From Macrostomum lignano (taxonomy: Eukaryota), in NCBI GenBank assembly GCA_002269645.1, contig NIVC01000404.1:186001-250000 (forward strand): a stretch of 64,000 bases of DNA, written 5' to 3'. Below, piece after piece: positions 48,570 through 58,263 of this stretch (its first letter is position 1; every line of letters begins with the position of its first letter). The position numbers were made by a program, and so were the translations under genes. The notes beneath the pieces are model-generated. The model was given only the letters and a program-made list of their open reading frames with translations, did not search any database and was not told the origin of the DNA.

Positions 48570-48621
48570 ATGATTAAAAGTAGGTCAACTTTGGCTATTC
48601 AACCAGCGCGGCCGAGAAGAA
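48570..48621 (+). CDS. Candidate first coding exon of the NPxTG-repeat gene (MIKSRSTLAIQPARPRR)
   Basis: ATG at 48570 and a strong GTGAGT donor in phase 1 match the downstream exons. A TATAAAAG at 48543 is so close that this ATG may sit at the transcription start. Confidence 0.45.
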
Positions 48622-48624
48622 GTG

Positions 48625-49570
48625 AGTCACTGATTTCTCACATCGATTCACTGATCTCTCACATCGATTCACTGATTTCTCACATCGATTCACTGATCTC
48701 TCACATCGATTCACTGATTTCTCACATCGATTCACTGATTTCTCACACCGATTCACTGATTTCTCACACCGATTCACTGATTTGATTTCTCACATCGATT
48801 CACTGATTTCTCACATCGATTCACTGATTTCTCACATCGATTCACTGATTTCTCACATCGATTCACTGATTTCTCACATCGATTCACTGATTTCTCACAT
48901 CGATTCACTGATTTCTCACATCGATTCACTGATTTCTCACATCGATTCACTGATTTCTCACATCGATTCACTGATTTCTCACACCGATTCACTGATTTCT
49001 CACACCGATTCACTGATTTGATTTCTCACATCGATTCACTGATTTCTCACATCGATTCACTGATTTCTCACATCGATTCACTGATCTCTCACATCGATTC
49101 ACTGATTTCTCACACCGATTCACTGATTTCTCACACCGATTCACTGATTTGATTTCTCACATCGATTCACTGATTTCTCACATCGATTCACTGATTTCTC
49201 ACATCGATTCACTGATTTCTCACATCGATTCACTGATTTCTCACATCGATTCACTGATTTCTCACATCGATTCACTGATTTCTCACACCGATTCACTGAT
49301 TTCTCACACCGATTCACTGATTTGATTTCTCACATCGATTCACTGATTTCTCACATCGATTCACTGATTTCTCACATCGATTCACTGATTTCTCACATCG
49401 ATTCACTGATTTCTCACATCGATTCACTGATTTCTCACATCGATTCACTGATTTCTCACATCGATTCACTGATTTCTCACATCGATTCACTGATTTCTCA
49501 CATCGATTCACTGACTTCTCTAATCGGTTCACTGATTTCTCACATCGATTCACTGATTTCTCTTACCGAA
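48625..49570. repeat. 21-bp minisatellite TCACTGATTTCTCACATCGAT
   Basis: Related to the 46915-47885 array; higher-order blocks present. Confidence 0.97.
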
Positions 49571-54600: not shown

Positions 54601-57600
54601 TACTTATGGTATAACATGTACAAGATTGCCTCGATTTCTAAAAGTTCTAATTTAATTACCATGCACACTTCCCTAATATGCTGTGATTAGGCCTAGGGAA
54701 ATAGTTAAATCTGATAGAACTCTCGTTTATTTTAAAGCTTCACTCAAGCAAACATACGTTTTGGCTTCAATTTAAAATAAAAAACAATTAAAAATGTTGC
54801 ATGCTGATTTTCGGGGCCAATAACGAACCGATCGCCTCTCCCCAAAGAGCGCAACCCGATCACTGGCAGCGGCATTCCCAAGAAGTCCACCATCGAACTG
54901 TGGCATCGACCGCCAGACTATCCGTTTAGAGAATATCTGGACCGACCGTTGACCCGGTCCAACTCTGTCATGGTTCACAGTAATGCTTGCTATCTGATTA
55001 AATAACCTGTTTTTACATGGTGATTGTAGTTGAAGATTTGTTAATTTATAACTGGTAGCTGGTGACCGATGCAACAGTGTGCAACTTTTTTCCAAGATGT
55101 AAATGTTGAAGTCTAAATTTTTATATCCTTGTATACTTCGATGAGTTTATCCGAATCCAAAAATAATACAAAAGATTTATCTTGAAGGCAGTTGAAGAAA
55201 TCTTTGTCTATTTATCCGCAAATCGTGAGTTAACTTTCCACGAAATATCTGCCGAAATTTCATGAGCATTGATATTTATAGACATTTCTAAGAGATAGAA
55301 TTTGTACGAGTAATTGGTACCCTAATCGAAAGTCAGCTAAGATCTCTCTGAATGATGATATTCTAAGAAACCACATTGCAGGCCGGAAGATATCTCAAAT
55401 TAACTTTTTTACTTACGAGCGAGGCTTTAAATGTATGAATTTTGGTTATTTTCAGTTCCTCTAGAGATAAACTCTGTCCTCAGTAAATTTAAAAAAACTT
55501 CTCCAGCTAAAGTCCAAATATATGAACCCATTTGAATATAATTCTAAGAAATGTTAGCCGATCATTTTTTAAAGATATATGTTTGCGTCAAAGTTTACAC
55601 TTGATACTATTAGGACACTTTCGTGGTGACGGTGAATTCTGTATTTACTCTGTGGATTCGTTTTAACTACTGGTGCCAGTTAGGCGACATCATTTTCAGG
55701 TTATCTCAAATGTTATTTTCACGTTGTTTATTTACAGGAATCCTAGCCTGATTACGCTGAATAAAAAATAATGTATTATAACAAATATATTTACAATTAT
55801 TATTATTGTTCTTTAGGTATTTTTACAATTTTAACTAATATTAAAAATAGCAACTTACATTTAATAGTATGAGGATATTGTATTGTTATCATTATTGCTA
55901 CTGTTAGTTATTGTTAATTCTTATTAAAAACACGTATATTGACCCTGCATGAACAGATCGCAGCCGAGTTAACCGCAACCCCCTGACGGGAGAGGACTCG
56001 AAACCTACAACTCCTCGACGAGTCATTAGTAAGCGAATTGTTGCTTTGTTGAAACGAAAAGCCACTTCTCCATAATGATTCAATAAAACTGCAGAGAAGA
56101 CCAACCCACTGACTGGGGAGAACTGCAGCAGCTTCAGCGTAAAGCCGGAGGAGCGACCGCAGAGAAGCAGAGCGGCCAGTGGCTCGTCGAAAGGTTGCAA
56201 TTGGATGCTTAATCTTTAATAGTTATGAGATATTTAGTTGTCAATCAGCTGTCCTCAGTTCCTAATCCAGCTGTCCTCAGTTCCCTAATCCAGCTGTCCT
56301 CAGTTCCCTAATCCAGCTGTCCTCAGTTCCCTAATCCAGCTGTCCTCAGTTCCCTAATCCAGCTGTCCTCAGTTCCCTAATCCAGCTGTCCTCAGTTCCC
56401 TAATCCAGCTGTCCTCAGTTCCCTAATCCAGCTGTCCTCAGTTCCCTAATCCAGCTGTCCTCAGTTCCCTAATCCAGCTGTCCTCAGTTCCCTAATCCAG
56501 CTGTCCTCAGTTCCCTAATCCAGCTGTCCTCAGTTCCCTAATCCAGCTGTCCTCAGTTCCCTAATCCAGCTGTCCTCAGTTCCCTAATCCAGCTGTCCTC
56601 AGTTCCCTAATCCAGCTGTCCTCAGTTCCCTAATCCAGCTGTCCTCAGTTCCCTAATCCAGCTGTCCTCAGTTCTCTAATCCAGCTGTCCTCAGTTCTCT
56701 AATCCAGCTGTCCTCAGTTCCCTAATCCAGCTGTCCTCAGTTCTCTAATCCAGCTGTCCTCAGTTCCCTAATCCAGCTGTCCTCAGTTCTCTAATCCAGC
56801 TGTCCTCAGTTCCCTAATCCAGCTGTCCTCAGTTCTCTAATCCAGCTGTCCTCAGTTCTCCAGCACGTTGAATCCCAGGTTCGAATCCGCTCACGGGCGA
56901 GGGCTACAACTCGTCGGATTCGAGACCTTCAACACCGCGCAAGCAGCTCGCCAACGGAGGCGGTGGCGGCCGTGTTGGCAACCCGCTGACAGGGGAAAAC
57001 TGTCAGTCGTACGATCTCAGCGCCGAATCTCGATCAAAAAAATCAAGCGAGAAAGGTAAACAAAAGGATAATAAAATGGCAGGTGTAATTAAATTTGTTC
57101 CAGACACTTATGGTAATGAAAAACCATTACATCGGTTACTTTTTCATCAAGGCGAACCGAAGAATCCTCTAACTGGAGAGAATTGTGAAAGCTACGATCT
57201 GACAGCTGAAAGTAAATCGCGACCGTCTACAGCTCGCGAAGGTGAGAATTAGCTCGTAACTTTTAATTGCATCAAAGATGAATTTAGCGACTTACGAATA
57301 ATAAACTACAGTAAATAATTTGCCACTATATATATAACTTGCATCACGAAGTCAATTAGATTTTTAGAAGCTCATCGAAGCCATCGAGCTCAATGACGTC
57401 AGTTCTATTTTTAGCAACATCTACTGAAAGTACATCGCGTCAGATCTATGTTTAGCAGCATCTATTGCAACTGTATGGCGTCAGTTCTATTTTTAGATAC
57501 ATATAGCAAAACTATGACGAAACTACCCAAACAAACAGTGACGTTAGTAGCTCGTACTATATTTTAGATAAACGCACATATTATCTATGCAATTCCATTT

Positions 57601-58263
57601 TTATCTGTGGTAACAAATCTGAAAACTTTAATGACACCGGTATGGTAAGAAAACCACGCTTTTAAAACTATATGACATCATTTCTATTTTGAGACACCGC
57701 ACAAAGAAGCTAAATGAGGTCAGTTCTATTATTAAAAAATCTTACCAAAACAATAGGGCATCAGTTTTCTTCTATCGAAAAGTTTTGTTCCTTAAATAAG
57801 AATCTACATCATATTTAGTACGCATAGATATTTACCTGAATTTTGCATTCACAGATCGTCCAAACCCATTAACTGGCGAGAATGTCAGCAGTTTTGACAT
57901 CAATCAGGAGCTGCGCAGCGACAGAGCCGGCGATCGTGGCAACGCCGTCAACGTCGATGACACCGGTGCCACCGCTATCGACAGTGTGGCCGCGGCTGTG
58001 GCCCCTGCTGAGGTTCCGGAAGGTGAGAGTTGTTGTCTGTTTTTCCACCTGTCTGCCTGTCTGTCTGTCTGTCTGTCTGTCTGTCTGTAGGGATGTATGT
58101 TTGTCTTAGTGGGTCTGTCTTTTAGTGTGTCAAGATGCCGTGGCTCAGTAATTAACTACATAATTGCTTGTGCAGTCTTTCTGCATGTCAAATACATTTT
58201 TAACAATTCGATATTCACGACAAACCCTTTTGCACAGGATACGATGAGGAGGAGACGTTCTGA
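51657..58263 (+). CDS. Uncharacterised [ND]P[IL]TG-repeat protein (Jupiter/MAP-like). Exons 51657-51758, 51853-51948, 52359-52472, 52570-52668, 54219-54326, 54848-54979, 55957-56028, 56095-56193, 56879-57055, 57152-57241, 57855-58022, 58238-58263 (stop)
   Basis: Eleven internal exons, all AG/GT-bounded, all multiples of 3 and phase 1-1, give one open frame. Repeats in order: RDPITGLG, RNPILGQG, RNPTDLSG, RDPIAGQG, RNPITGSG, RNPLTGED, TNPLTGEN, SNPLTGEGY, GNPLTGEN, KNPLTGEN, PNPLTGEN. The protein ends GYDEEETF*. Confidence 0.88.
51957..52340. repeat. (CTGT)n microsatellite filling an intron
   Basis: Direct reading. Confidence 0.98.
52749..53055 (+). mobile_element. tRNA-derived SINE with CORE/Meta-like central domain
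   Basis: B-box GGTTCGATTCC at 52796-52806. The segment TTCTTGAGCAAGACACTGAAC...CTTCAGTTCATCCAGCTGTAAAATGGG resembles CORE/Meta SINE domains. TAA-rich tail. Boundaries approximate. Confidence 0.75.
53075..54120 (-). mobile_element. Degenerate RTE-like LINE reverse-transcriptase fragment in an intron
   Basis: Frame-broken translations: HNFLDFRKA, VWHEAL, VRQGCPLLPVLFNLLL, GRRTNDLRIADD, GMEISTEKSKLM, LGSRIEDNGELDMEIWVRI, EGRRGRG. Five tandem 51-52-bp copies lie inside at about 53530-53765. Confidence 0.85.
56240..56863. repeat. 23-bp minisatellite TTCCCTAATCCAGCTGTCCTCAG, about 27 copies
   Basis: Direct reading. Confidence 0.98.

Follow-up and report, generated by a model that had tools for sequence, protein, structure and literature searches.

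We analysed a 64,000-nucleotide stretch of the Macrostomum lignano genome (GenBank assembly GCA_002269645.1, contig NIVC01000404.1, positions 186,001 to 250,000 of the forward strand; hereafter the window, with positions counted from its first letter). The region from 48570 to 58263 of the window is a real, transcribed gene with 13 coding exons. We read its product, with moderate confidence, as a disordered array of short NPxTG-type motifs, 436 (or 444) residues long, that belongs to a flatworm branch of the Jupiter/JPT family and for which microtubule binding is proposed.

The original prediction had called the gene unannotated, which proved incorrect. It is absent only from the prokaryote-style list of open reading frames (ORFs); its product, when the acceptor at 52383 is used, is identical over 436 residues to GenBank BOX15_Mlig025565g1 (P0001). 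The GenBank annotation of NIVC01 (Mlig_3_7) was built from genome-guided StringTie/TACO assemblies of RNA sequencing (RNA-seq) data and a de novo transcriptome (PMC5730564), so that the exon chain, including exon 1, is transcript-derived. The UniRef label of a sister model (P0002) is "Microtubule-associated protein Jupiter".

The coding sequence runs on the plus strand from the ATG at 48570 to the TGA at 58263, with AG acceptors and GT donors that are all canonical; the open stretch around each motif is edged by a good acceptor and a good donor. The rebuilt model agrees with the earlier description of eleven internal exons of 72–177 nt, all multiples of three long and in phase 1-1. What had been a candidate exon 1 is used by P0001 and conserved in a Macrostomum paralogue (P0004), where it is likewise 52 nt long and the protein starts MIKSRSAFNMPSNRPRR. 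The predicted acidic DEEETF end was also recovered. The predicted length of about 444 residues was only partly borne out. An in-frame acceptor at 52359, 24 nt upstream of 52383, adds 8 residues to exon 4 and gives 444 residues, while the RNA-seq-derived public model chooses 52383 and gives 436.

The protein contains two types of unit, namely four or five N-terminal R[DN]PIxGxG units (type A) and six C-terminal NP[LIV]TGE[NGD]xxx[FY] units (type B), joined by basic, variable linkers. The earlier claim that the motif changes in this manner along the protein is thus confirmed in the rebuilt sequence. The exons, all on the plus strand and the internal ones all in phase 1-1, are as follows.

Exon 1, 48570..48621, +, 52 nt: begins with the ATG, ends in phase 1 (donor GAA/gtgagt) and encodes MIKSRSTLAIQPARPRR (MIKSRS...RPRR).
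Exon 2, 51657..51758, +, 102 nt: WLNAVGSQDG...LPFCDLETGTKNR; no NPxTG; carries the family-conserved LPxxDxETGxKNR block and the sole predicted helix.
Exon 3, 51853..51948, +, 96 nt: type A unit VQRDPITGLGLLGREF..., 31.4 bits with the unit-A profile.
Exon 4, 52383..52472, +, 90 nt with the acceptor of the public model (or 114 nt): type A unit DRNPILGQGNLG.
Exon 5, 52570..52668, +, 99 nt: degenerate unit RNPTDLSG...LDVLRPNNRP, the counterpart of RNPIxLTGxLGxExDxLR in the orthologues.
Exon 6, 54219..54326, +, 108 nt: SRDPIAGQGDFGREWDPIRKYAGRP, the family's most conserved block, 33.3 bits with the unit-A profile.
Exon 7, 54848..54979, +, 132 nt: ERNPITGSGIPKK...; a cassette, not present in paralogue P0004.
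Exon 8, 55957..56028, +, 72 nt: RSRVNRNPLTGEDSKPTTPRRVI, a type B unit with a TPRR site; possible cassette.
Exon 9, 56095..56193, +, 99 nt: KTNPLTGENCSSFSV..., 36.6 bits with the unit-B profile.
Exon 10, 56879..57055, +, 177 nt: two type B units, SNPLTGEGY...TPRK...GNPLTGENCQSYDL.
Exon 11, 57152..57241, +, 90 nt: EPKNPLTGENCESYDL..., 31.8 bits with the unit-B profile.
Exon 12, 57855..58022, +, 168 nt: RPNPLTGENVSSFDINQELRSDR and an Ala/Val-rich tail, 34.2 bits with the unit-B profile.
Exon 13, 58238..58263, +, 26 nt: entered in phase 1, encodes the C-terminus GYDEEETF and ends with the TGA stop.

To quantify the motif, we searched all six frames of the whole window for the pattern [ND]P[ILVM][TALS]G. 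It occurs ten times, always on the plus strand (51864, 52391, 54227, 54853, 55977, 56103, 56884, 56980, 57163 and 57863), and nowhere else in the six frames of the window. Shuffling of the region gave a mean of 0.065 matches (maximum 2 in 1000 shuffles), and shuffling of the protein's own residues gave 0.019. The ten strict motifs lie on only nine exons, since the 177-nt exon holds two. The claim that ten of the eleven internal exons carry the motif therefore stands for nine; a tenth (52570–52668) has only the degenerate RNPTDLSG, which aligns to RNPIxLTG of the orthologues, and exon 2 has none. The linkers contain both of the predicted sites of the cyclin-dependent kinase type, TPRR (residue 245) and TPRK (residue 302), and similar [ST]PR sites stand ahead of units in the paralogue and in a gene of the nemertean Lineus longissimus that is considered below.

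If each exon had a chance of 1/3 of being a multiple of three long, all 11 internal exons would be so with a probability of 6e-6; with a chance of 0.4 per exon, the value would be 4e-5. Each motif-bearing internal exon begins 1–6 codons 5′ of its motif, so that a single exon holds a unit and the linker that goes with it, except for exon 2, without a motif, and exon 10, with two units. In-silico removal of any one internal exon kept the frame and the stop codon intact and created no new stop. Scans of positions 44000–64000 with the unit profiles revealed neither hidden cassette exons nor an alternative last exon of the NIITG type; a weak match at 59646–59672 (8 bits) was discarded, as it lies in AT-rich non-coding sequence.

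The composition of the protein (isoelectric point 9.28; grand average of hydropathy −1.04; S 11%, R 11%, G 9.4% and P 8.7%, together 40%) is basic and rich in Ser, Gly and Pro. AlphaFold2, run on an alignment of 16 sequences, returned a mean predicted local distance difference test score (pLDDT) of 45.6 and a predicted template modelling score (pTM) of 0.16, with one 11-residue helix at residues 28–38. The protein is thus predicted to be intrinsically disordered, a basic array of motifs with variable linkers. Disorder and a basic, Ser/Gly/Pro-rich composition are features of the Jupiter/JPT family as well.

The gene belongs to a family that is conserved among flatworms. We retrieved 29 homologues (expect value E down to 1e-271) from Macrostomum, cestodes (Hymenolepis, Echinococcus, Mesocestoides, Spirometra and Taenia) and trematodes (Schistosoma, Fasciola, Paragonimus, Clonorchis, Echinostoma and others). 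The cestode and trematode homologues are 380–450 residues long and have E values of 1e-52 to 1e-18. Their source names are inconsistent: many are called "surface protein PspC", and others SH2, MBD, Ig-like or Shugoshin_C. Invariance in the 16-sequence alignment is confined almost exactly to the motif residues, and the linkers vary. The invariant blocks are RDPIxGLG, RNP...E...R, RDPIxGxGxFGxEWDPxxxYxG, and N-P/x-x-T-G-E-N in successive units. RDPIxGLG, on exon 3, is invariant in the 16 orthologues and is the closest counterpart of RNPITGLGLNG in Drosophila Jupiter; in the block on exon 6 (RDPIxGxGxFGxEWDPxxxYxG), the residues R, D, P, I, G, G, F, G, E, W, D, P, Y and G are invariant in the same set. 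The NxLTGENxxx[FY]xxxQEMRSE sequence of exon 12 is also kept in orthologues. Invariant motifs with variable linkers are the signature of a short-linear-motif array.

The exon plan is ancient and conserved in flatworms. The Macrostomum paralogue P0004, which is 44% identical to the window protein, has all 12 of its internal exons in phase 1-1, as has the Schistosoma guineensis orthologue (11 of 11 internal exons, in a gene of 13 exons over 61 kb). The exon with two units is found at the same position in Schistosoma (174 nt) and in the Macrostomum paralogue (186 nt).

Flatworms have, besides, a second paralogue family (P0035, P0038, P0043 and P0059, from Sparganum, Paragonimus, Heterobilharzia and one unnamed source). 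Its members share the N-terminal blocks LPYVDxxTxxKNR, RDPITL.GD.GEE.D..RPHGGRP and GREWDPIYKYDGR, and have TDPITHS-type units in place of NPLTGEN and a long Pro-rich tail.

As references for the relationship with Jupiter and JPT, we used stand-in sequences for Drosophila Jupiter and human JPT1 and JPT2. They are usable as such, because they pass the Pfam JUPITER model (592 bits over the full model for Drosophila Jupiter, 33.6 for JPT1 and 45.3 for JPT2; cut-off 27). The motifs that the original prediction had cited are indeed there: the Pfam-checked Drosophila sequence contains RNPITGLGLNG and GNPVTGEGY. The insect-type order, an RNPITGLG unit followed by one or more GNPVTGEGY-type units, is also that of the flatworm family. 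BLASTP of P0001 against Drosophila Jupiter gave E 5e-4, solely from this pair of motifs, and comparison of the flatworm alignment (A1) with a Jupiter alignment (A3) by hhalign gave E 1.3e-4 over 40 columns, with a probability of 54%.

We also carried out the suggested profile hidden Markov model search. HMMER with the family profile A1 against 1.84 billion representative sequences returned 51 proteins, among which the only non-flatworm matches were those of the nemerteans Tubulanus (E 4.6e-29) and Lineus (E 3.2e-16) and of the beetle Dendroctonus (P0060, E 5.8e-7). The beetle protein passes Pfam JUPITER (31.9 bits against the cut-off of 27, at profile positions 273–324 of 359), and its relatives are named Jupiter-like. 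A protein search with the Lineus sequence P0048, directed toward molluscs and annelids, returned only the two nemertean genes. The flatworm unit profiles scored the proteins of interest, relative to 500 shuffles, as follows.

Drosophila Jupiter: unit A 16.4 bits, unit B 8.6 bits; shuffles as good, 0/500 (A) and 1/500 (B).
Beetle Jupiters: unit A not above shuffles, unit B 9.5–17.6 bits (P0060, 17.6); shuffles as good, 0/500 (B).
Nemertean proteins: unit A 20.1–21.5 bits, unit B 24.2–26.3 bits; shuffles as good, 0/500.
Human JPT1 and JPT2: no unit A and no unit B; not above shuffles.

Gene structure points in the same direction. In the Jupiter genes of Phyllotreta and Dendroctonus, phase 1-1 exons of 84–87 nt carry the NPVTG units, with the intron 3–4 codons before the motif, and the junction after the first exon is in phase 2 and leads into an exon ending in phase 1; Lineus has the identical junction. 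An NPxTG motif on a phase 1-1 exon with an intron a few codons upstream, a criterion of our own and not part of a curated family definition, was found in the window gene, the Macrostomum paralogue, Schistosoma, Lineus, Dendroctonus and Phyllotreta. The Lineus gene supplies a further link. Its isoform X6 starts MTSTTNSIGLNPDSRNSSRVLNPPGGRVSINLFG and shares 50% identity over 62 residues with the Pfam-checked JPT1 N-terminus (E 6e-10), and the transcripts with this JPT1-like start run on into RDPILG and NPxTG units.

Several results weigh against this assignment or against the role proposed below. Searched at E up to 10, Pfam JUPITER (PF17054) matched neither the window protein nor P0001, the paralogue P0004, seven orthologues or the nemertean isoforms. 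Jupiter/JPT proteins are also recognised by an N-terminal (R)VLxPPGG(G)SxxxFG and a C-terminal (N)PPGG(K/F)SS motif; P[PG]GG is present in none of the flatworm sequences retrieved, and only the Lineus isoforms have one. Among the motifs of the family, PPGG alone has been shown by experiment, in JPT2, to bind microtubules (PMC12773733), and the window protein lacks it. The similarity to Jupiter is confined to about 40–60 residues of short motifs, for which the hhalign probability was only the 54% given above, and the unit profiles found no match in human JPT1 or JPT2. The Lineus link hinges on a Gnomon model in which the PPGG exon and the repeat exons belong to one gene. We found no test of the role of NPxTG in the literature, Jupiter itself included.

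Taken together, the results suggest that the relationship is real but distant. As far as sequence and exon structure can tell, the flatworm family appears to be an enlarged branch of the protostome Jupiter/JPT family, in which both NPxTG-type units were kept and multiplied and PPGG was lost. The earlier description of the protein as Jupiter-like thus holds for its motifs, its exon architecture, the beetle profile match and the Lineus N-terminus, but not for Pfam JUPITER or PPGG. We conjecture that RRIWLNAVGS, at the junction of exons 1 and 2, is a decayed remnant of the PPGG region.

We then considered whether the symmetric exons are used as cassettes, as judged from gene and transcript models, which are unquantified. 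A second, near-identical copy of the locus (L001) exists in the same assembly and is 95–99% identical to the window by megablast, introns included, the identity being lowest in the first intron, which is rich in tandem repeats. Exon 7 is intact in this copy, with 100% identity including its flanks, yet it is skipped in the transcript model of that locus (P0003). The UniRef model P0002 equals the window product without exon 8; because P0002 comes from an older annotation of unchecked method, the evidence for skipping of exon 8 is weaker. Among the 14 isoforms that NCBI lists for the Lineus gene (X1–X14), the differences are precisely whole unit exons (90, 93, 96 and 117 nt), together with one mutually exclusive pair (26299–26391 versus 27888–27983 of locus L004) and three alternative first exons. 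These models show that the symmetric exons serve as cassettes in at least one relative, Lineus, and they probably do so in the M. lignano gene. As to the proposed modularity by exon skipping, the maintained frame, the models without exon 7 or exon 8 and the 14 Lineus isoforms support it, but regulated tuning of valency goes beyond them.

The first exon of Lineus isoform X1 (LOC135494118; L004 8994–9100) encodes a hydrophobic segment, MWYELFSAVLGLILYLVFMFLC, which raises the possibility of a Jupiter-family protein with a membrane-anchored form.

With respect to function, localisation to microtubules is known for Drosophila Jupiter and for human HN1 and HN1L (PMC11590752). JPT2 has four imperfect PPGG repeats, and three short regions containing the last three repeats each localise to microtubules; deletion of these three repeats abolishes microtubule localisation. 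The binding of JPT2 to microtubules is direct, and a luminal position is reported for it (PMC12773733). On the model of the NPPGGK*S units of human JPT2, each unit of the window protein could be a weak tubulin- or microtubule-binding site, and the array would bind microtubules multivalently. Phosphorylation of the proline-directed linker sites TPRR and TPRK might tune the binding. Dropping of cassette exons, which would proceed without a frameshift because every internal exon is symmetric, would yield isoforms with fewer units. We infer that multivalent microtubule binding is the most likely role of the window protein; the part played by NPxTG, the regulation by phosphorylation and the regulated use of isoforms are likewise inferred. 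A more specific proposal, which we put forward tentatively and consider rather doubtful, is that NPxTG is an unrecognised tubulin- or microtubule-binding motif distinct from the PPGG of JPT2. Flatworms and nemerteans would have arrays of 8 to 12 such motifs, with valency set by cassette splicing of the ancient phase 1-1 exons, and the arrays may reside in the lumen of singlet microtubules, the location reported for JPT2. Literature searches on the flatworm orthologues turned up one mention in an expression table and no functional work: Smp_055220, a "surface protein PspC" that may be an orthologue, is mildly higher in pairing-experienced schistosome males (PMC3820750).

The most serious alternative is that the protein is a disordered scaffold peculiar to flatworms and nemerteans, in which NPxTG binds a partner other than tubulin, such as an enzyme or an adaptor, and that its likeness to Jupiter reflects common descent of a short motif, or convergence on one, without shared function. 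The missing PPGG, the missing Pfam JUPITER match and the confinement of the similarity to short motifs would all suit such a protein. JPT2 itself is moreover reported to have roles apart from microtubules, in NAADP signalling and phase separation (PMC12803092). However, Jupiter has the identical two unit types in the identical order, the exon phase and intron position are common to the beetle Jupiter genes, and the nemertean gene unites a JPT1-like N-terminus with the same repeats. We therefore think a scaffold of this kind unlikely, although it is the strongest of the competing explanations. A ciliary or flagellar microtubule inner protein, with repeats lining the lumen of axonemal doublets, is considerably less probable. 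The host is a ciliated flatworm, JPT2 has been reported in the microtubule lumen (PMC12773733), and a short motif repeated at a fixed spacing of about 30 residues would suit a protein that follows the lattice. The unit lengths, however, vary from 24 to 56 residues, so that the repeat period is not fixed. Profile A1 had no match at E up to 10 among 177,635 distinct PDB sequences, a set presumed to include axonemal doublet structures, and cilium-specific expression data were not found. This alternative, which the original prediction had offered beside the Jupiter-like one, thus gained no support from the PDB search.

The source names of the orthologues would instead suggest a secreted or surface protein ("surface protein PspC", TagH SH3-like), and three cestode orthologues (P0007, P0008 and P0009) do exceed the cut-off of Pfam TagH_SH3-like (PF22269), with 27.2–29.1 bits against 27. 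The match, however, is to a 17-residue N.ITGENC..Y.V stretch, the motif itself, and covers 17 of 62 profile positions; it is probably a false positive of a bacterial domain model. The window protein has no TagH match, its N-terminus (MIKSRSTLAIQPARPRR) is not hydrophobic, disorder and no SH3-like fold is predicted, and the source names contradict one another. We regard these labels as spurious and the surface-protein explanation as very improbable and effectively refuted. Least credible of all is a chance pattern or a dead gene, for which nothing speaks beyond the repeat-rich surroundings. It is refuted by the presence of 10 motifs where 0.065 were expected, by the identity of the product with an RNA-seq-derived protein, and by the conservation of the family across flatworm classes with invariant motif residues.

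As the gene is already publicly annotated, the gain is one of interpretation and no new genetic element is added. If the assignment to Jupiter/JPT and the proposed role hold, a conserved flatworm protein mislabelled as PspC, SH2, MBD or Ig-like, with members in schistosomes, liver flukes and tapeworms, would receive a family, and the Jupiter/JPT family would reach beyond Pfam detection. NPxTG would become, besides PPGG, a candidate functional unit of Jupiter proteins. The layout of one unit per symmetric exon, from insects to flatworms, would be a clear case of a disordered motif array enlarged through duplication of exons and adjustable in size through splicing. Transgenesis is available in M. 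lignano (PMC5730564), and the gene could then serve to test how motif number sets microtubule affinity.

The surroundings of the gene are eukaryotic and rich in tandem repeats. A tandem-repeat search of positions 48000–59000 showed introns full of long arrays that abut splice sites (48627–49562, 50246–50783, 51240–51646, 51956–52340, 53501–53767 and 56246–56858). In intron 1, a 21-bp unit repeated 43.6 times begins 5 nt past the exon-1 donor; 50784–51239 is bordered on one side by (TAGA)135 and on the other by the complementary (TATC)102, which reaches to within 10 nt of the exon-2 acceptor. Nearly all of intron 3 is (TCTG)96, and a 23-bp unit repeated 26.7 times comes to an end 20 nt ahead of exon 10. 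The arrays are not of the same length in the window as in the duplicate locus L001, whose upstream neighbour is a PIP5K-domain gene on the opposite strand (L001 1–727, −). Intron 5 contains, at about 52750–52820, a tRNA-like stretch with the B-box GGTTCGATTCC, uncalled by ARAGORN, and on the minus strand at 53306–53947 a 213-residue ORF without a Pfam match; both look like debris of short and long interspersed nuclear elements. ARAGORN and Rfam revealed no RNA genes in the window. Downstream of the gene, an ORF at 62788–63486 (+) encodes a reverse-transcriptase domain (RVT_1, E 4e-18) and is a retroelement; it lies in a GC-rich block (60001–64000, 56–64% GC). Long ORFs at 2486–5092, 13886–15672, 21082–24897 and elsewhere have extreme GC/AT skew and weak, unrelated Pfam matches, with no single stretch that passes alone. 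We tentatively take them to be translated tandem repeats and not genes.

Among known systems, Tau, MAP2 and MAP4 are alike in principle, with short motifs (PGGG) repeated in tandem along a basic, disordered chain and in-frame cassette splicing; no sequence relationship was found, and the window protein has no match to the Pfam Tubulin-binding model. Cassette splicing alters the repeat number of tau, giving the 3R and 4R forms. Human JPT1 (HN1) and JPT2 (HN1L), of the same Pfam family as Jupiter, are disordered like the window protein and have repeated short motifs of the NP..GG type, but their motif is NPPGGK*S and not NPxTG, they have 2–4 units in 154–190 residues, and the flatworm unit profiles miss them.

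Jupiter itself (PF17054) resembles the window protein in being disordered, basic and serine-rich, with an RNPITGLG-type unit followed by NPVTGEG-type units. It differs in number, since most Jupiters examined have two NPxTG units (four in Dendroctonus P0060) and the window protein has ten or eleven. Drosophila Jupiter has N- and C-terminal PPGG motifs and the window protein none, and the blocks LPxxDxETGxKNR and GxFGxEWDPIxKYxG of the window protein are not in the Jupiter sequences examined. The beetle Jupiter genes share with the window gene a short first exon joined to the gene body and NPxTG units on phase 1-1 exons, whereas the first exon ends in phase 1 in the window gene and in phase 2 in the beetle genes. 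The beetle genes mapped have one first exon each, alternative first exons being found only in Lineus. The closest non-flatworm homologues are the nemertean genes LOC135494118 (Lineus longissimus) and LOC141906064 (Tubulanus polymorphus). Unlike the window gene, that of Lineus has a JPT1/Jupiter-type N-terminus (VLNPPGGRVSINLFG), a choice of three first exons and a long insert rich in Gln and Ser, and its products are 626–728 residues long. Like the window gene, it has internal phase 1-1 exons (13) and isoforms that differ by cassette exons, and both nemertean genes encode the two types of unit, ordered as in the window protein.

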